From IMG/VR virus record IMGVR_UViG_3300035183_000733, positions 309,760 through 373,759 of that record: a stretch of 64,000 bases of DNA; one strand, given 5' to 3'. Below the pieces are notes generated by a model, which did not search any database, was not told the DNA's origin, and saw nothing but the letters and a program-made list of their open reading frames with translations. A program made the position numbers and the translations under genes. Positions 2,502-9,625 of the stretch are shown piece after piece. Position 1 is the stretch's first letter. Every line of letters starts with the position of its first letter.

Positions 2502-2843
2502 TGGAATTAACGGAGAAACAAATAAACTATATAAGTACGCTGGCATAGAGGACAAGATTCCTTCTGTGTGACCTACTTACGAGGCGGCTGCTATAGAGAT
2601 GGCGCAAGACCTATGCTACACATGGGATGCTCGCGAACCGGAACTTTATAGAGTGGCGTGTCTACTGGAGCTTAGGGTGCCAGGGTTAAAATTATCACAG
2701 CACCTGGACCCCACACACATAATAAAAAACATAACATTATAAAATACTCGATGGCAAAATAACTTCAAGAGCAAAGGTTACAGCGCAGAGGAGATCGCGG
2801 AGTATGGTAGCTACATCGAGTTGATTGAGGAGAAAATAAAATG
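2498..2843 (+). pseudogene. Remnants of one or two small genes broken by frameshifts/stops
   Basis: Protein-like pieces in different frames: MELTEKQINYISTLA; AAIEMAQDLCYTWDAREPELYRVACLLEL; NNFKSKGYSAEEIAEYGSYIELIEEKIK*. Confidence 0.4.
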
Positions 2844-3581
2844 AAAGTCTGGTTCATAAGCGACACACATTGCAAGCACATGTTTCTGGATATACCAGAC
2901 GGGGTTGATATGGCCATACATGCCGGGGACATGTCCAACTCGAAGGAACCGGCCGTCAACAACAACGAGGTACGCGATTTCCTCGAGTGGTACAAGTCAC
3001 TCACGCATATCAAGTACAAGGTGCTTATTGCCGGCAACCATGATACGTCCATAGAGAAGGGACTCGTCACGAGAGGGGACATACATGAGTCCATAACTTA
3101 TCTCGAGCACGAATACGCAGAGGTCGGCGGACTCAAGATATTCGGCAGCCCGTACACCCCGCAATTTGGGAAGGACTGGGCATTCAATGTGCCGCGCGGG
3201 TGCATCTCCTCGTATTGGGACGATATTCCAGAAGGTCTCGACATACTGATAACGCACGGCCCTCCCAAGGGAATACTCGACCTTACGCAGTACGACACGA
3301 GGGCTGGCGCGGATGGTCAGTCATTCTTCCAGTGCGGGTGCAAAGATATGTTGCGCGCGATAGCCAGGAAAAAACCGAGGTACCACGTGTTCGGTCACAT
3401 ACACCCAGAGGAGAACTGCCCAAATAGCGGCGCTCTGAATATACAGCATTGCGACACAACATTCATAAATGCTGCGGTGTGCAGCTTCGGTAAGTCTGTT
3501 TTTGACGGTGTCAAATTCAAGAACATACATAACAACGGGCACCTCTTTGAGATAAATAAACTGTCTGTGGAAAAATTTTAG
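2841..3581 (+). CDS. Calcineurin-like metallophosphoesterase
   Basis: ISDTH, HAGD, IAGNHD, LITHGPP, HVFGHIH motifs. Confidence 0.9.
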   Translation: MKVWFISDTHCKHMFLDIPDGVDMAIHAGDMSNSKEPAVNNNEVRDFLEWYKSLTHIKYKVLIAGNHDTSIEKGLVTRGDIHESITYLEHEYAEVGGLKIFGSPYTPQFGKDWAFNVPRGCISSYWDDIPEGLDILITHGPPKGILDLTQYDTRAGADGQSFFQCGCKDMLRAIARKKPRYHVFGHIHPEENCPNSGALNIQHCDTTFINAAVCSFGKSVFDGVKFKNIHNNGHLFEINKLSVEKF

Positions 3582-3614
3582 ACGGGGCGTGTACAACGGA
3601 ACAGATTATTTTCG

Positions 3615-3622
3615 TAATTTTG
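3615..3622 (+). promoter_or_regulatory. Bacteroidota-type -7 promoter element ahead of the leader/tRNA array
   Basis: TAATTTTG matches TAnnTTTG. Confidence 0.55.
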
Positions 3623-3684
3623 CTTCAGAATCCGAAACAAATAGGATATATAGGATATAACGTAAAACTTTAATACAGCAGAAA

Positions 3685-3777
3685 ATGTTCGCAACAATAA
3701 CAAAAGGGATGTACACAGGGACCACCTTCACAACGAAGAAGGATGGTAAAGTATTCTCCGGGATTTGCGAGTCATGA
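3685..3777 (+). CDS. Putative leader (attenuator) peptide MFATITKGMYTGTTFTTKKDGKVFSGICES
   Basis: 30 codons, below the ORF-track cutoff; 7 Thr, 4 Lys, 4 Gly, 2 Met, 1 ATA; overlaps the antiterminator arm. Confidence 0.7.
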   Translation: MFATITKGMYTGTTFTTKKDGKVFSGICES

Positions 3778-3813
3778 TGTGCTGAACAGTATACAAGATT
3801 CCTAAAATCCCGG
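3758..3813 (+). promoter_or_regulatory. Putative antiterminator hairpin
   Basis: CCGGGATTT (3758-3766) pairs with AAATCCCGG (3805-3813); GAGTC (3769-3773) pairs with GATTC (3797-3801). Confidence 0.7.
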
Positions 3814-3840
3814 TTAAAACAACCGGGATTTTTTGTTTTT
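3804..3840 (+). terminator. Intrinsic terminator directly upstream of the first tRNA
   Basis: AAAATCCCGGTT-AAAAC-AACCGGGATTTT followed by TTGTTTTT. Confidence 0.85.
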
Positions 3841-3844
3841 ATAC

Positions 3845-3916
3845 GCATCCGTAGCTCAATGGTAGAGCTCCCGGCTCTTAACCGGTAGGTTGAAGGTTCG
3901 AGTCCTTCCGGGTGCA
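3845..3916 (+). tRNA. tRNA-Lys(CTT)
   Basis: Cloverleaf; anticodon loop CT-CTT-AA; T loop TTCGAGT. Confidence 0.9.
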
Positions 3917-3940
3917 CAAAAGGTCTGGCGACCAAAATAT

Positions 3941-4021
3941 TGCGGGGTGACTGAAGATGGTATCAGGTAGGACTCATGATCCTATGCGCAAGCCTCGGAG
4001 GTTCGAGTCCTCCTCCCGCAC
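3941..4021 (+). tRNA. tRNA with CAT anticodon (Met or Ile2), 12-nt variable arm
   Basis: TAGGA-CTCATGA-TCCTA; variable region TGCGCAAGCCTC; GGAGG-TTCGAGT-CCTCC. Confidence 0.8.
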
Positions 4022-4025
4022 AAAT

Positions 4026-4073
4026 GCCGAGTTGAAAGGGAACGCACAGCCGGCGGGCTGCCCCTCGGCTCCA
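4026..4073 (+). ncRNA. Minihelix-like hairpin ending in T-CCA
   Basis: GCCGAG/CTCGGC closing stem, GGG/CCC and CAGCC/GGCTG inner stems, then TCCA. Confidence 0.35.
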
Positions 4074-4135
4074 ATTAGGGAATGACACTGCTGTGGTACA
4101 CCGAGGCAGTGAGGAAGACAGGAATCGGTGTTCAT

Positions 4136-4208
4136 GCGGGAGTAGCTCAGTTGGTAGAGCGTCACCTTGCCAAGGTGAAGGTCGCGGGTTCGAATCCCGT
4201 CCCCCGCT
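4136..4208 (+). tRNA. tRNA-Gly(GCC)
   Basis: Canonical cloverleaf; TCACC-TTGCCAA-GGTGA. Confidence 0.95.
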
Positions 4209-4210
4209 CA

Positions 4211-4301
4211 GTGGACAAGAATGGTCGGGGTTGCGATACCGATCACCCAATGAGAGAGGACCTCGAATCTCGCACAAGGTCATTATCTCACTTGTCCGCC
4301 A
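4211..4301 (+). ncRNA. Structured RNA motif, copy A (3-way junction)
   Basis: GTGGACAAG/CTTGTCCGC, TGGTCGG/CCGATCA, TGAGA/TCTCA, GACCT/AGGTC; homologous to 4816-4900 with compensatory changes. Confidence 0.7.
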
Positions 4302-4306
4302 CATTA

Positions 4307-4395
4307 AGTGGTTCTGTTGTCGTCGTTCATTATTGAGAAATTTAGAACTCGACAATCCAAAGTAAATCCTGGTAATAGGGTCCAGGAGAACCGCT
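4307..4395 (+). ncRNA. Putative structured spacer RNA
   Basis: AGTGGTTC/GAACCGCT closing stem enclosing GTTGTCG/CGACAAT and TCCTGG/CCAGGA hairpins. Confidence 0.45.
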
Positions 4396-4401
4396 GAACA
4401 T

Positions 4402-4473
4402 TGCGGAGAGGTTGTTGGTAACCTTCTGGTCTCATAAGCCTGGACCCCGGCAGTTCGATTCTGCCCTCCGTTA
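4402..4473 (+). tRNA. tRNA-Met(CAT), probably initiator
   Basis: 1:72 T/T mismatch, GGTCTCATAAGCC anticodon arm, GGCAG-TTCGATT-CTGCC. Confidence 0.8.
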
Positions 4474-4477
4474 CAAA

Positions 4478-4550
4478 GGACAAACTGATGTAGATCGTGA
4501 GACCGAAAGGCCGCCGGAGCCAAGGTGAAAATTCCCTTCAGTCCCTGTCT
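4478..4550 (+). ncRNA. Putative structured spacer RNA
   Basis: GGACA/TGTCT and ACTGA/TCAGT closing stems with internal GNRA-capped hairpins. Confidence 0.35.
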
Positions 4551-4559
4551 AAAATATTT

Positions 4560-4649
4560 GCGGGTGTCGCGTAGTTGGTCCATCGCACCAGCCTTCCAAG
4601 CTGGTCAGATAAGGTCAGATCGTGAGTTCGAATCTCACTACCCGCTCCA
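4560..4649 (+). tRNA. tRNA-Gly(TCC) with 17-nt variable region
   Basis: CCAGC-CTTCCAA-GCTGG; variable TCAGATAAGGTCAGATC; encoded CCA. Confidence 0.85.
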
Positions 4650-4733
4650 CGTTCTCTCTGGGTGACTATGAGATGTACCTGACTCTTAACCGCTGAACCT
4701 GGGACCAGTTGGAGGTAGCAAGTGGAGAGAACG
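4650..4733 (+). ncRNA. Putative structured spacer RNA
   Basis: CGTTCTCTC/GAGAGAACG 9-bp closing stem, TACCT/AGGTA inner stem. Confidence 0.45.
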
Positions 4734-4739
4734 TATTTT

Positions 4740-4813
4740 GCATGTAACGCATAAGTGGTGGTGCGCCAGCCTTCCAAGCTGGAACAGAGTCGGTTCGATC
4801 CCGACTACATGCT
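4740..4813 (+). tRNA. tRNA-Gly(TCC)
   Basis: GCATGTA/TACATGC acceptor; CCAGC-CTTCCAA-GCTGG. Confidence 0.9.
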
Positions 4814-4815
4814 CA

Positions 4816-4900
4816 GTGAACAAGATGATTGGGGTTATGCCAATCGTCCTATGAAAGAAGAAGCAGAATCTCACACTGCATCGATATTTCACCTGTTCAT
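4816..4900 (+). ncRNA. Structured RNA motif, copy B
   Basis: GTGAACA/TGTTCAT, TGATTGG/CCAATCG, TGAAA/TTTCA, GCAG/CTGC; loop GAATCTCACAC like copy A. Confidence 0.7.
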
Positions 4901-4903
4901 TAT

Positions 4904-4976
4904 GCTGCTGTAGTTCAGTCGGTGGAACACGTCCTTGGTAAGGACGAGGTCGCGGGTTCGATCCCCGCCGGTAGCT
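4904..4976 (+). tRNA. tRNA-Thr(GGT)
   Basis: Canonical cloverleaf; CGTCC-TTGGTAA-GGACG. Confidence 0.95.
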
Positions 4977-4978
4977 CG

Positions 4979-5161
4979 ATGAAGACAAGAGAGATAAAAA
5001 CGAGGCAGGTCGAACTATACGAGATAGATAAACCTGTCGAATATAAATTGAACGCTATGTCCGATTATTATTGCAAGATAATGGGCGGAAAATTTAAACC
5101 GTCTGTACAGTTCTCGATAACAACTTATCTTGAGCATACGGGCATTAAGAGAAGAATGTAA
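4979..5161 (+). CDS. Small hypothetical protein within the tRNA array (MKTREIKTRQ...)
   Basis: ATG just after tRNA-Thr; the ORF-track start at 4829 runs through RNA genes and is unlikely. Confidence 0.55.
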   Translation: MKTREIKTRQVELYEIDKPVEYKLNAMSDYYCKIMGGKFKPSVQFSITTYLEHTGIKRRM

Positions 5162-5164
5162 ATT

Positions 5165-5246
5165 GCCTGAGTGGCATCAGTGGTCGACTGCGCCTGCCTT
5201 GTAAGCAGGAACTCAAACAACGGGGGTTCGAATCCCTCCTCAGGCT
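5165..5246 (+). tRNA. tRNA-Thr(TGT) with 12-nt variable region
   Basis: CCTGC-CTTGTAA-GCAGG; variable AACTCAAACAAC. Confidence 0.9.
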
Positions 5247-5395
5247 CAAAAAATAATGGCAGATCCGCATGACCGTTTCGGATACTAATACCCAAAGGTC
5301 GTTAATCATGGGAGCCAAAAAATTTAAGAAACGAAAATGAAGCAGAAACGAAAATATAAACGGTAACGCCTTGCTGACTGCGAGGCATCAATCAT

Positions 5396-5468
5396 GCGCT
5401 CGTAGCAAACCGGTTGTAGGCAAATGGCTTTTAACCATTCAGGTCTGGTTCGACTCCAGACGGGCGCA
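5396..5468 (+). tRNA. tRNA-Lys(TTT)
   Basis: AATGG-CTTTTAA-CCATT; TCTGG-TTCGACT-CCAGA. Confidence 0.85.
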
Positions 5469-5492
5469 CAAATAAGAACGAAGTAAAATTTT

Positions 5493-5580
5493 GCGTCTGT
5501 TGCTCAGTTGGCCGAGAGCACCACACTTTTAATGTGGAGTGGGGTAACCACCATCGCAGGTTCGAATCCTGCCGGGCGCA
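5493..5580 (+). tRNA. tRNA-Lys(TTT) with long variable arm
   Basis: CCACA-CTTTTAA-TGTGG; variable AGTGG-GGTAA-CCAC-CATC. Confidence 0.9.
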
Positions 5581-5592
5581 CAAAATTTAAAC

Positions 5593-5683
5593 TGCCCCGT
5601 TCGCTTAGCTGGCCGAAAGTACCGGACTCTTAATCCGGAGAAGGTAACTTCCAACGTGGGTTCGAATCCCACCGGGGCAACCA
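5593..5683 (+). tRNA. tRNA-Lys(CTT) with long variable arm
   Basis: CCGGA-CTCTTAA-TCCGG; variable AGAAG-GTAA-CTTC-CAAC; encoded CCA. Confidence 0.9.
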
Positions 5684-5696
5684 AAATGTATGAACG

Positions 5697-5963
5697 ATGG
5701 AATGTAACGTAGAACGCGAGCTCAGAGAGCGGCTCGTGAATTTCAGGAGGATCTGGGTGCACTACACTCGCCTCGGCTCTCTGTGTGTTACGCTCTTCCC
5801 GGCGGAACCGCACTCTCAGTACCGGATAGTCACCAGGCAGAAACTCGGCGACCGCATCTGGCGCAGGACGAAGACCACTGACGAGAACGGCAACGAGACC
5901 GTGCTCAAGGAGCTGGACGTTGACCTGATCGAGAGAATTGTGAGGGAAGACTTAGCGCTGTGA
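5697..5963 (+). CDS. Hypothetical protein; last codons overlap the next tRNA
   Basis: 88-aa ORF with coding-like codon usage. Confidence 0.6.
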   Translation: MECNVERELRERLVNFRRIWVHYTRLGSLCVTLFPAEPHSQYRIVTRQKLGDRIWRRTKTTDENGNETVLKELDVDLIERIVREDLAL

Positions 5964-6036
5964 CCAGAGATGGTATTGGACCTCCCTCATAAGGAGGCGC
6001 GGAAACGCATCGCCGGTTCGAGTCCGGCCAGCGCTA
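5954..6036 (+). tRNA. tRNA with CAT anticodon (Met or Ile2), long variable arm
   Basis: AGCGCTG/CAGCGCT acceptor; CCTCC-CTCATAA-GGAGG; variable CGCG-GAAA-CGC-ATC. Confidence 0.85.
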
Positions 6037-6214
6037 CAAGTTAGTTCTAAATTTTGTATATTGCCAGTAACTGTTTGATTACAGATAACTAAAACTAAAA
6101 AGGAAAAAATATGTTTTTAATAGGATTCTCAGGTATTGCCCCGCTACGAGAGCTACTGTCAGTAAGTAAAAACAACAGAAGGGAAGGCTTCTGAATTTAT
6201 AATTTAAAAACTAA

Positions 6215-6489
6215 ATGACAATGGAAAAGAAATTAGGGAAAATTGAAAGCGTAACCTTTGGACACGGAGGAAATGTGCTTGGGATGCCGAAATGATTAAG
6301 TGGGACAAAAATTGCAAATGGACAGAAGCCGACAGAGATAAGCAATACGCTGAGATTATGCGTTACCTATCAAAATTATTAAAGGAGGCAAAAGTTGATA
6401 GTGTTGATAAATTAAAAGGTGTGCCGATTGAAGCAACTTTTGATGGCAATATGCTAAAGGAGTGGAGAATTTTGACGGAAGTTATTTAG
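6215..6489 (+). pseudogene. Conserved phage hypothetical gene with internal deletion and frameshift near 6270
   Basis: MEKKLGKIESVTFGHGG in one frame joins KCAWDAEMIKWDKNCKWTE...LLKEAKVDSVDKLKGVPIE in another. Confidence 0.6.
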
Positions 6490-6712
6490 TACACAGGTGA
6501 GCTGGGTTGTTTTTATTTCTTCTTAGCCCGTGTTATATTTTCGGTTGCTTTTCGCAACTGGAATATAACGGTCGGGTGTTTATGAAGTTGGGGCATTCAA
6601 GGCTCTAATGTTCATACAACCACCGAAGTAAAATAGTAGCACAAAGGCTGAGTGCTTAGTTATCAGCCCTAAGCCCTAATTTTGTTAGCGGTTCGTGGTA
6701 GTTGTAAAAAAA

Positions 6713-6744
6713 TTTGGTTGTTACGATATTTATACGTATCTTTG
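6713..6744 (+). promoter_or_regulatory. Bacteroidota sigma-70-type promoter
   Basis: TTTG (6713-6716), 20-nt spacer, TATCTTTG (6737-6744) = -33/-7 consensus. Confidence 0.75.
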
Positions 6745-6748
6745 TCGT

Positions 6749-6988
6749 ATGGAAAATATAAAAGTAAAAAATTTGAAACGTGGTTATGGTGTAAACCATT
6801 CAAAACATGGCTACATTCAATATCGTGGACTTGCAACAAAACACCCTTATACAGATGAGCCAAAAGTACCACATAGATATGTATTTTGGCCTGCAATAGA
6901 TGAAGACGGTAAAGCATTGCCTGATGTTGTTTTGACAGATGGTAATGAAATTGTTGAACTGGTTGATAAATATGAGGAGGTGGAATGA
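6749..6988 (+). CDS. Hypothetical protein (MENIKVKNLKRG...)
   Basis: ATG just downstream of the promoter; AT-rich. Confidence 0.6.
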   Translation: MENIKVKNLKRGYGVNHSKHGYIQYRGLATKHPYTDEPKVPHRYVFWPAIDEDGKALPDVVLTDGNEIVELVDKYEEVE

Positions 6989-7374
6989 GAATAGAAATTA
7001 ACCTTATAGACATGAAGAACGCTCAAGGACAAATTGACAGGAAAGGCAGGAACACAATGAACATGAAGAGACTACGCGAGCTGAAGGATCAGTTCGTGAC
7101 AGAGAATTACGGCAATGACAGCATGACGAGCGATGTGGTGGCGGTGGCGGCCATAGACAAGTTCTTTAATTTCGTGAAGGCAAAGGAGAAGGAATGTAGG
7201 GCCAACGATTTCAAGCCGGACCCGTCCCCAATGATCGGAACCAACCCGTTCCGCAAGGACGCTGTTAGCGACGGTGACCACCTTTTTATACCCCCGACGG
7301 AAACGGACCGTGGTTCCATGGACGAACGTTTTAACCGCCTGCTCAACTACAGGGTTGAGACCTCGGTGGAATAA
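6985..7374 (+). CDS. Hypothetical protein
   Basis: ATGA overlap; 129 aa. Confidence 0.6.
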   Translation: MRIEINLIDMKNAQGQIDRKGRNTMNMKRLRELKDQFVTENYGNDSMTSDVVAVAAIDKFFNFVKAKEKECRANDFKPDPSPMIGTNPFRKDAVSDGDHLFIPPTETDRGSMDERFNRLLNYRVETSVE

Positions 7375-7397
7375 ATATCCAGATAAATAGATTAAGA

Positions 7398-7478
7398 GGT
7401 GACCGAAGGGGAGCATGCTTCCCTGGCAAATATCCGAGCGCGTCCTCGCCTTAAGTCCGTAAATAGGGGCTGGTCACC
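7398..7478 (+). ncRNA. Putative structured RNA directly upstream of tRNA-Thr(CGT)
   Basis: GGTGACC/GGTCACC closing stem, AGGGGAGC/GCTTCCCT hairpin. Confidence 0.45.
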
Positions 7479-7483
7479 AACTT

Positions 7484-7559
7484 GCCGATGTAGTTCAGCT
7501 GGTAGAACGTCGGTATCGTAAACCGAAAGTCGCAGGTTCGAATCCTGTCATCGGCTCCA
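7484..7559 (+). tRNA. tRNA-Thr(CGT)
   Basis: Canonical cloverleaf; TCGGT-ATCGTAA-ACCGA; encoded CCA. Confidence 0.95.
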
Positions 7560-7573
7560 AAAATTATTACGGT

Positions 7574-7699
7574 ATGGAGTTCAAGGAGCTGGAGATAATA
7601 AAGATTGAGACGGAGGATCGGTTCTTCGTCACCGACCAGGGTGAGCTCGGTATAGAAATGCAGATAACAGTGCTGCCGAGTGGCAGCGTGATTGAATAA
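7574..7699 (+). CDS. Small hypothetical protein (41 aa)
   Basis: MEFKELEIIKIETEDRFFVTDQG... with coding-like usage. Confidence 0.45.
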   Translation: MEFKELEIIKIETEDRFFVTDQGELGIEMQITVLPSGSVIE

Positions 7700-7714
7700 C
7701 AAAAACAAAAAGCC

Positions 7715-8306
7715 ATGAAAAAAGAATCGGTAGTTCTTGAGATACGTGCGGCGGCCGGTAGAGATGATGCAAAACTTCTTGTAGAAGAAATGACGTCTAT
7801 TTATCGCAAAGCCGCCATCTGGCTCTCACCGTTGGACTCGAATACCCCCTACGGAGAAGAGAGGCAGGGTCCAGACGAGCATCGTCACGGTGGCAGTCAT
7901 GGACGATAAACCACAACAAAACTTCGTGCTAAACCGCAACGACGTCGACCGCAAGTACTGCAGGTCTGGCGGCAAGGGCGGGCAAAAGGTGAACAAGGTC
8001 GAGACTTGCGTCGTGCTCACGCATATTCCGTCCAGCATGCAGGTCAGGTCGGAGGAGCACAGGACGCGCGAGAAGAACGAGGCCGCGGCCTGGGAACGCC
8101 TGGAGGACAAGCTGCGGGCCATCCACGACAACGGGGAGGGCCGCAAGATCCAGGGCATCCGCAACTCGCAGATAGGCACCGGAGAGCGCAACGACAAGCG
8201 CAGGACCTACCGGGACCAGGACGGCTACGTCATCGACCACGTCACAGGGAAACGGATTACGATGAAGGACCTGTATAAGGGGAACATCGGAGGTCTCCAC
8301 GTGTAA
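7715..8306 (+). pseudogene. RF1-like class I peptide release factor homologue (no N-terminal domain), split by deletion plus frameshift near 7815
   Basis: Frame 2: VVLEIRAAAGRDDAKLL; frame 3: SGSHRWTRIPPTEKRGRVQTSIVTVAV, SGGKGGQKVNK (GGQ at 7977-7985), GERNDKRRTY. Confidence 0.85.
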
Positions 8307-8313
8307 AAGTATT

Positions 8314-8580
8314 ATGGATATAGAGATGGTTTACATACAGCACTGCGACCTGCCGGAGTGCGCGCTCGGGACTGCCGAGTGGGACTGCCCGAGTTGTGGA
8401 GGACACAACATCGAGTACGACGATTTCTTTTACGAGGAGTACGAAAAGGAACACAAGGGTGAGCTTTGCTGCGATTGGTGCCGGGCAGAATTTGAAGTTG
8501 AGAAAAAAGAATACGGTATTTACAATATTAAAAAGGAGGTAAACAATGAGCAATTGGAAAGTAATAAAGACAAAGATTGA
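8314..8580 (+). CDS. Hypothetical Zn-finger protein
   Basis: CPSCG and CDWC motifs. Confidence 0.6.
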   Translation: MDIEMVYIQHCDLPECALGTAEWDCPSCGGHNIEYDDFFYEEYEKEHKGELCCDWCRAEFEVEKKEYGIYNIKKEVNNEQLESNKDKD

Positions 8581-9625
8581 GGTGTTCGATCACCCGGATG
8601 CGGCGAAACTGCAAATCGGAAAGATTGGCACATACCAGGTAGTTGTGCAGAAGGGACTGTACAACGGTGGTGAGGACGTGGTATTCGCTCCCGAGAAGTC
8701 CATCCTGAACGGTGAGCTTGAGAAGGAGTACAAGAACTACCTGCACGGTCCTGATAAGAACAGGGTTGGTTCTATTCGTTTGAGAGGTGAGCTATCTTGT
8801 GGTATCATCATACCTAACGAGCTTGTGTTCGCGCAGTGCGGTAAGCACATAAGCGAGCTGCCTAACGACGAGGACCTGTCGGAGATTCTTGGTATAACCA
8901 AGTACGTGCCGAGGGTTCCTTCCGAGATGGAGGGCGTGGCGGTTCCTATCGAGTACGACAACTTCTCGATAAAGCACGACGTCGAACAGTTCGGTGTTTA
9001 CGCTGCTGACTTCGTGGACGGGGAGCGTGTCGTGATAACGGAGAAGCTGCACGGGTCGCAGCTCGTGGCATACATCTCTGTGCACAACGACAACCAGGTT
9101 AAGGCAAAGTGGGTGTCTACCAAGAACTACAACGCCGAGGGCTTGTGCCTTGTGGAGAGCGATACCAACTTCTACTGGATGGCGGTTAACGATATAGGGT
9201 TATTCTCCAACATACTGGACTTGCTGCCCAATCTGTCCGCCCTCGCCGGGCTCAGCTCCGGCGATGAGATGGTGGTGCAGGTGTTCGGTGAGGGTATTCC
9301 TTGTCAGGCCATGAAGTATGGTTTCGTCAACCCGACTATGAAGATATTCGGTGTGACGATAAACGGAAAGACATATCCTTACGATCAGCTTCCGGAGTAC
9401 TTCAGAAAGAATTGGGTTCCTGTTCTGTACGACGGACCTTACGAGAACGTGCCGGAGCTCAAGAAGCTTGCGCTCGGTAACGAGAAGGTGTCCGGCCAGG
9501 AGCTGCACATTAAGGAGGGCATTGTAATAACTCCTTACGAGGTGCGCAGGGCCAAGGACGGGACATGGCTGAAAGTTAAGGTGATTAACCCGAAATACAA
9601 GGAGACAGGCGAAGAATTTTCGTAA
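8546..9625 (+). CDS. ATP-dependent RNA ligase (DRB0094/Rnl2-like)
   Basis: N-terminal OB-like domain (HPDAAKLQI...RLRGELSCG), motif I TEKLHGS, motif III FGEG, motif IV KEGIVI, motif V LKVINPKY. Confidence 0.88.
   Translation: MSNWKVIKTKIEVFDHPDAAKLQIGKIGTYQVVVQKGLYNGGEDVVFAPEKSILNGELEKEYKNYLHGPDKNRVGSIRLRGELSCGIIIPNELVFAQCGKHISELPNDEDLSEILGITKYVPRVPSEMEGVAVPIEYDNFSIKHDVEQFGVYAADFVDGERVVITEKLHGSQLVAYISVHNDNQVKAKWVSTKNYNAEGLCLVESDTNFYWMAVNDIGLFSNILDLLPNLSALAGLSSGDEMVVQVFGEGIPCQAMKYGFVNPTMKIFGVTINGKTYPYDQLPEYFRKNWVPVLYDGPYENVPELKKLALGNEKVSGQELHIKEGIVITPYEVRRAKDGTWLKVKVINPKYKETGEEFS

Follow-up and report, generated by a model that had tools for sequence, protein, structure and literature searches.

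The tRNA array and its leader region

The window, a stretch of 64,000 nt that forms part of the 373,759-bp contig IMGVR_UViG_3300035183_000733, carries all of its long ORFs on the plus strand, where the leader and array features described below also lie. A metallophosphoesterase gene identified by Pfam (2841-3581) is located directly 5' of the leader region, and an array of 13 tRNAs, detected with ARAGORN and Rfam, extends from 3845 to 7559. The array is restricted to tRNAs for Lys (CTT twice, TTT twice), Gly (GCC, and TCC twice) and Thr (GGT, TGT and CGT) and to three tRNAs with a CAT anticodon, and the tRNA order is the same in the related loci L004, L005 and L007. Six of the 13 tRNAs are long, at 81-91 nt (3941-4021, 4560-4649, 5165-5247, 5493-5581, 5593-5683 and 5954-6037). 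They adjoin normal 73-75-nt versions with the same anticodons, and these pairs are kept in L004, L005 and L007. In the two long Lys tRNAs displayed, the additional nucleotides form a long variable arm of the class-II-like kind, an unusual trait for a Lys tRNA.

NYN, NADAR, metallophosphoesterase and RNA-ligase genes flank the array (389-1021, 1131-1637, 2841-3581 and 8546-9625), and NUDIX and NAMPT/NAPRTase genes are found upstream of the array in the relatives, so the surroundings look like an RNA repair and NAD neighbourhood. A mini release-factor gene, consisting of the end of a PCRF domain and an RF-1 GGQ domain, is interrupted in the window (7715-8306) as well as in L033 (9839-10549) and L034 (9848-10528). 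In the window, the release-factor-like N-terminal part starts at 7715, the +1 frame is open from 7794 and the switch lies near 7816, while in L033 and L034 a stop codon separates a PCRF-like ORF of 42-45 amino acids from the main ORF in the same frame. The arrangement recalls prfB and suggests programmed recoding. Genes resembling GIY-YIG homing endonucleases were seen in L034 (3459-4010 and 4278-4922, between array tRNAs) and in L003 (5638-6249).

The leader region begins with a candidate Bacteroidota-type −7 element, TAATTTTG (3616-3623), which matches the pattern TAnnTTTG. This pattern is enriched in noncoding DNA, with 8 of its 11 copies on the plus strand of the window falling within the 17% that is noncoding. 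The element is invariant in L002, L004, L013 and L007, and TAnnTTTG is also present 5' of the leaders in L033, L034 and L045 and of both leaders in the huge phage LR756502. The element would place the transcription start near 3630. The predicted hosts of the clade are Bacteroidetes (PMC7162821). Upstream of the candidate promoter, the motif GGAAAAATTTT (3568-3582) is kept in L002, L004, L013 and L007; it overlaps the last phosphoesterase codons in the window and is noncoding in L004 and L013. The leaders of the huge phage LR756501 have the inverted repeat GGAAAAAA-TGAC-TTTTTTCC in its place. The leader 5' UTR (3630-3684), with GAAACAAA..GATATATAG.ATATAA, is conserved out to L033, and within it a TATAAC/TATAAT-like element (3654-3659) offers a possible alternative promoter.

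The leader ORF occupies 3685-3777 and comprises 30 codons followed by TGA, with the translation given in the first-pass annotation. That annotation had proposed that the leader is built from the codons read by the downstream tRNAs, and our recount agrees with it in every number: 17 of the first 22 codons are ACA (four), ACC (two), ACG, AAA (two), AAG (two), GGG (two), GGT, ATG (two) and ATA. The putative regulatory stretch spans codons 4-22 (3694-3750), and the array tRNAs can read 16 of these 19 codons, which specify Thr, Lys, Gly or Met or are ATA. Over the whole ORF, the array anticodons can read 18 of the 30 codons in frame, as against 7 and 3 in the other two frames, and none of 20,000 shuffles of the ORF reached 18 cognate codons (p < 5e-5). 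Its share of Thr, Lys, Gly and Met is also unique among the 253 ATG-initiated ORFs of 20-45 codons in the 64-kb window. The peptide has no Pfam match. No Shine-Dalgarno sequence precedes the start codon, where the DNA is A-rich; such a sequence is present before only 12 of the 56 long genes of the window, whose upstream regions are 44% A. Because starts of this kind are the norm in the window, the leader looks like an ordinary start for this phage, and the ORF is presumably translated.

Downstream of the ORF lies a predicted intrinsic terminator (3804-3840) with a 5' arm at 3804-3815, a loop, a 3' arm at 3821-3832 and a T tract that runs to 3840. Its hairpin (3804-3832) has a 12-bp stem with 5 GC pairs and a folding energy of −16.2 kcal/mol. 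The first tRNA starts at 3845, leaving gaps of 12 nt from the hairpin and 4 nt from the T tract. A promoter would not fit between the terminator and this tRNA, so transcription of the array requires read-through of the terminator. We also considered a bidirectional or purely operon-ending terminator and rejected it, since the first tRNA begins 5 nt past the T tract.

Within the ORF, 9-17 nt upstream of the stop codon, the segment CCGGGATTT (3758-3766, segment 2) is identical to the terminator 3' arm and complementary to AAATCCCGG at 3805-3813 in the 5' arm, as had been noted earlier. It can thus serve as an antiterminator strand. GAGTC/GATTC, named earlier as an extension of this pairing, forms the base of a central hairpin (3769-3801), which contains the stop codon and stacks inside the antiterminator. 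In L033, the stop codon likewise sits in a small hairpin, analogous to this one. When the two alternative folds of 3750-3845 were compared, as the first-pass annotation had advised, the terminator-enforced structure (−26.6 kcal/mol) and the antiterminator-enforced structure (−26.5 kcal/mol) were nearly equal in energy. If the transcript is cut before the 3' arm, the minimum free energy (MFE) structure is the antiterminator, with 3758-3766 paired to 3805-3813 around the central hairpin. Segment 2 is the best upstream partner of the terminator 5' arm (p = 0.016, dinucleotide shuffles).

Leaders in related loci and before other arrays

Relatives that share the array were found by searching for homologues of two of its neighbours, the flanking phosphoesterase and the mini release factor downstream. 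The first-pass annotation had staked its reading on conservation of the ORF, and the ORF, its frame, the position of its stop codon and the terminator are indeed kept in five distinct relatives; the ORF is present in frame in every relative with the array. The leader is present in L002 (ORF at 9036-9122), L004/L005 (8849-8938 in L004), L013 (5845-5934) and L007 (1826-1915), and also in the much more diverged L033 (7177-7272) and L034 (2361-2474). All indels among these ORFs are multiples of three. Substitutions between the window and L007 are spread about equally over the three codon positions, implying that the peptide sequence is not under strong purifying selection. Several replacements exchange one member of the set for another (K to T, M to K, Y to T, T to M and D to G), many overall remain within Thr, Lys, Gly and Met, and the in-set codons number 18 of 29-31 in L007 and L033, 19 of 29 in L004 and 23 of 37 in L034. 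The bias is again specific to the reading frame, with cognate counts in frame and in the two other frames of 19/4/3 in L004, 18/5/5 in L007 and 23/9/8 in L034, next to 18/7/3 in the window. What is conserved is the composition, not the peptide sequence, and the pattern of substitutions is as expected if the codons of the leader count and the peptide itself does not.

Scans of IMG/VR with terminator, tRNA-Lys and combined terminator and tRNA patterns, with the phosphoesterase and with an NYN alignment found the window's own contig only. In the JGI metagenomes, the tRNA-Lys pattern had no match, and the NYN alignment gave 17 loci, of which the 11 longest were scanned and are all without tRNAs. 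The phosphoesterase homologues in L003, L006, L008 and L010-L012 and the mini release-factor homologue in L032 are not beside arrays, and a megablast search of 2800-6200 against phages gave a single tRNA-sized match. Contigs from public RNA runs contained mainly tRNAs of other organisms; one metatranscriptome contig, which may be DNA, covers the equivalent of 3745-3919 in a relative. Right after the leader terminator, tRNA-like sequences missed by ARAGORN were seen in L033 (7359-7425) and on the minus strand of LR756501 (about 174050-174120), one with a CAT and the other with a TTC anticodon loop, and Rfam reports an extra tRNA at 7789-7877 in L033. Because ARAGORN misses atypical tRNAs in arrays, the sets given for the arrays are not complete.

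Matches to the mini release factor extended to huge phages of Al-Shayeb et al., and we surveyed the whole of LR756501 (735 kb) and 550 kb of LR756502 (642 kb) for further leaders. A fixed rule was used, in which a terminator lies no more than 700 nt upstream of the array and an ATG-initiated ORF of at least 15 codons ends between −5 and 70 nt before the terminator 5' arm. For six arrays with other amino-acid sets, this rule yields exactly one ORF per array. In LR756501, codons of the array's own set make up 25 of 41 in the leader of the Arg/Thr/Val/Ala/Gly/Pro array (L045, 3394-3522), 14 of 25 in that of the Met/Gln/Ile/Glu array, 7 of 21 in that of the Leu-only array, where all six Leu codons are used, and 16 of 30 in that of the Trp/His/Phe/Lys/Ser array. 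LR756502 served as a blind test and gave 21 own-set codons of 33 for the Asn/Leu/Val/Ile/Thr/Arg array and 10 of 34 for the Pro/Asp/Gln array. The seven Ser codons in the leader of the Trp/His/Phe/Lys/Ser array cannot be read by the sole Ser tRNA detected there (CGA).

The −log10 p values for the array's own set are 2.0-4.4, whereas the best other set reaches at most 1.1 under the automated rule and at most 1.8 in the leader-by-array matrix. For five independent pairs, the true assignment of leaders to arrays is the best of 120 permutations, and the four LR756501 leaders rank 3, 1, 40 and 27 among the 2,392 small ORFs of that genome. Leaders of different arrays share no peptide similarity. The survey of other jumbo-phage arrays that had been suggested earlier thus bears out the idea that leader codons track array anticodons, in seven independent pairs from three genomes, all belonging to one phage clade.

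Some tRNA genes in these phages have no such leader. No leader was found upstream of the Ile/Cys/Asp/Asn/Tyr array of LR756501, and no leader ORF upstream of two tandem tRNAs with a CTA anticodon in the same genome (690585-690738, L059). The latter are amber suppressors, labelled Pyl by ARAGORN, that lie behind a TATATTTG motif and a small hairpin, which hints at TAG recoding in LR756501. ARAGORN also reports, at 204243-204333 and 228902-229090 of this genome, one tRNA-like gene whose anticodon has four bases (TTAC) and two whose anticodon loop is given as two bases. The motif GTTCTTTGAC-N5-TTGAAATA stands directly before several tRNAs of LR756501, both after leader terminators and inside arrays (for example near 173900, 187050, 194950 and 367350). 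It resembles the TAATTTTG..GAAACAAA region of the window and may be a second or internal promoter or a processing signal. A blastn search of LR756501 leader and array sequences against phages gave generic tRNA matches and no orthologous arrays; no tRNAs were found around the mini release factor in LR745206, LR756502 and LR756504, or in the first 300 kb of LR756502.

Proposed attenuation and its alternatives

In all 13 leaders examined, an intrinsic terminator is predicted between the ORF and the tRNAs. The strongest upstream partner of the terminator 5' arm is found at the ORF's 3' end in each of 11 leaders (p 0.002-0.07 each, dinucleotide shuffles), and the MFE structure of the truncated transcript contains this pairing in the same proportion, 11 of 11. 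The terminator stem is invariant in close relatives, where the loop varies, and has a different sequence in distant ones. The pairing segment itself differs by lineage, for example CCGGGATTT, GTTTGGGA, GCCGGGC, GGGTGTGGGT, TGATTGG and TTCGGGGTT, implying joint change of the ORF segment and both terminator arms. We regard this three-way co-variation as the strongest structural evidence short of experiments.

We consider it likely that a ribosome-mediated transcription attenuator stands before the phage tRNA array. Transcription would start at the Bacteroidota-type promoter near 3616-3630 and produce a leader RNA with a 30-codon ORF dense in codons decoded by the downstream tRNAs (Thr, Lys, Gly, Met and ATA). 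In the emerging RNA, 3758-3766 would pair with 3805-3813 around the central hairpin to give the antiterminator. A ribosome translating smoothly to the stop codon would occupy or unwind 3758-3766, so that the terminator (3804-3832) and its T tract would form and transcription would end, presumably at 3840, just 5 nt short of the first tRNA. A shortage of decoding capacity that stalls the ribosome on the test codons, or a lack of leader translation, would preserve the antiterminator and allow RNA polymerase to enter the array. Expression of the tRNA genes would then be set by how well their own codons are decoded, in a closed loop that would be self-limiting because its tRNA products relieve the stall. 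The phage would thus probably make the array tRNAs only when the ribosome struggles with the array's codons.

The direction of this response, from stalling or lack of translation to read-through, is deduced from the layout. The regulatory codons precede the pairing segment, and this segment would be within, or immediately behind, the stretch covered by a ribosome that has reached the stop codon, so smooth translation should favour the terminator. Two LR756501 leaders have a gap of 17-18 nt between the end of the pairing segment and the stop codon, which is about as far as a ribosome terminating there would reach. Segment 2 is sequestered only weakly in folds of 3630-3770, where no conserved partner for it is seen. 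There is no convincing 1:2 pairing of the trp type, and the circuit would therefore be expected to read through if the leader is untranslated. Such 1:2 pairing is not universal among ribosome-mediated attenuators. The core of the first-pass annotation, namely a leader-peptide attenuator whose codons mirror the array and whose terminator and antiterminator exclude each other, was supported by every comparative test it had proposed. Its further idea, that the sensor responds to anticodon nucleases such as PrrC and PARIS, is compatible with the anatomy and is speculation, and RNA-repair-type genes do lie nearby; a simpler reading, homeostatic feedback on decoding capacity, accounts for this anatomy too.

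Other readings of the region have to be weighed against this attenuator. The ORF might be an ordinary small-protein gene or a chance ORF with its own terminator, in which case the tRNAs would come from leaky read-through or from elsewhere and the codon match would be a coincidence. That the ORF is short, without a Shine-Dalgarno sequence or a family match, would suit this explanation, as would the strength of the terminator and the positional conservation of one peptide part, T-x-K-K-G-G-K..F.G, in the window-type family. We nevertheless find it very improbable, given that the leaders of other arrays show no likeness in peptide yet match the amino acids of their own arrays, that the N-terminal half varies freely but within the codon set, that the ORF segment complementary to the terminator co-varies with both arms, and that no room for a promoter exists before the first tRNA. 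A translation-free RNA element appears just as improbable, whether it is a sensor of tRNA or protein, such as a T-box-like or protein-dependent attenuator, or acts only in tRNA-precursor processing or stability. Nucleotide conservation covers the entire 5' UTR and leader, untranslated parts included, and the substitutions lack third-position bias, as such an element would predict. The enrichment of cognate codons, however, is strictly frame-specific and bounded by the start and stop codons, the indels are in frame, and a readout of several amino acids over more than 10 codons suits a ribosome, not a single specifier loop. Moreover, neither the T-box nor any other Rfam family matches 3400-3845.

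A somewhat less remote alternative, though still an unlikely one, accepts translation of the leader and differs in the signal or its sign: the element would sense global translation status, timing after infection or amino-acid starvation, or its polarity would be reversed so that translation promotes read-through. Amino-acid shortage also causes stalling, untranslated RNA is predicted to read through, and ribosomes that terminate near a terminator can suppress termination (PMC4824070). In the window, however, 26 nt separate the stop codon from the stem, a distance at which the terminator would stay clear of a terminating ribosome. Regulatory codons are always found upstream of the pairing segment, and a global sensor needs no leader tailored to each array. 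Anatomy, conservation, frame-specific bias, three-way co-variation and the leader-to-array match across independent arrays are observed, and it is on these that we prefer the ribosome-mediated attenuator.

Relation to known systems and implications

The thrL, hisL, trpL, leuL and pheL attenuators likewise combine a short leader ORF rich in regulatory codons and an intrinsic terminator with an antiterminator that uses the terminator 5' arm and is governed by the position of the ribosome. Thr and Ile are likewise mixed in the thr leader. Each phage leader samples three to six amino acids, unlike the leaders of amino-acid operons. Those operon attenuators control biosynthetic enzymes, while the window element would control 13 tRNAs; it also differs in having no clear 1:2 pairing and in residing in a phage with a probable Bacteroidota host. 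The classical scope of attenuators, which covers biosynthesis, transport and synthetase genes, does not include it. Closest in logic is the pheST attenuator of E. coli with its leader pheM, in which a leader peptide controls a component of the translation machinery via that component's own codons. However, pheST is a cellular system that concerns a synthetase and one amino acid. The product in the window is the tRNA itself, and the loop would consequently close directly on decoding, unlike that of pheST.

T-box riboswitches also tie tRNA status to read-through by a choice between terminator and antiterminator, but they read one uncharged tRNA directly, through a specifier codon and the T-box sequence, and do so ribosome-free. 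A T-box or a known leader family, such as Thr_leader, was discarded as a candidate for the window element: a permissive Rfam scan of 3400-8000 returned tRNAs and sub-threshold chance matches. Phage tRNA arrays are commonly explained by a match to phage codon use or by replacement of tRNAs that host defences remove. The array described here is comparable to the tRNA clusters of T4, T5 and other phages and to huge-phage repertoires (Al-Shayeb 2020). The Mahaphage paper (PMC7162821) does not mention attenuators or leaders. In the open-access literature we found no published description of leader-peptide control of phage tRNA arrays, nor of a feedback loop from decoding to tRNA synthesis. The putative ribosome-mediated attenuation of tRNA genes would be a new variation on the attenuator theme.

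Control of tRNA genes is usually placed at initiation and growth rate. If the proposed reading is true, decoding capacity would feed back directly on tRNA synthesis by means of a leader-peptide attenuator. For annotation, leader content would predict array content, including tRNAs missed by standard tools, and for engineering, these leaders would offer compact sensors that are programmable through codon choice. Whether huge phages run closed-loop tRNA control for each codon family, with a bespoke leader per array that senses a decoding shortfall and provides replacements on demand, is in our view an evenly balanced question. The shortfall could arise from a mismatch with host codon usage or from defences that cleave or deplete specific tRNAs, and a 230-nt element would make the ways in which phages cope with both testable. 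As one leader would sense one set of amino acids, such control would also explain why huge phages group their tRNAs into arrays by set.
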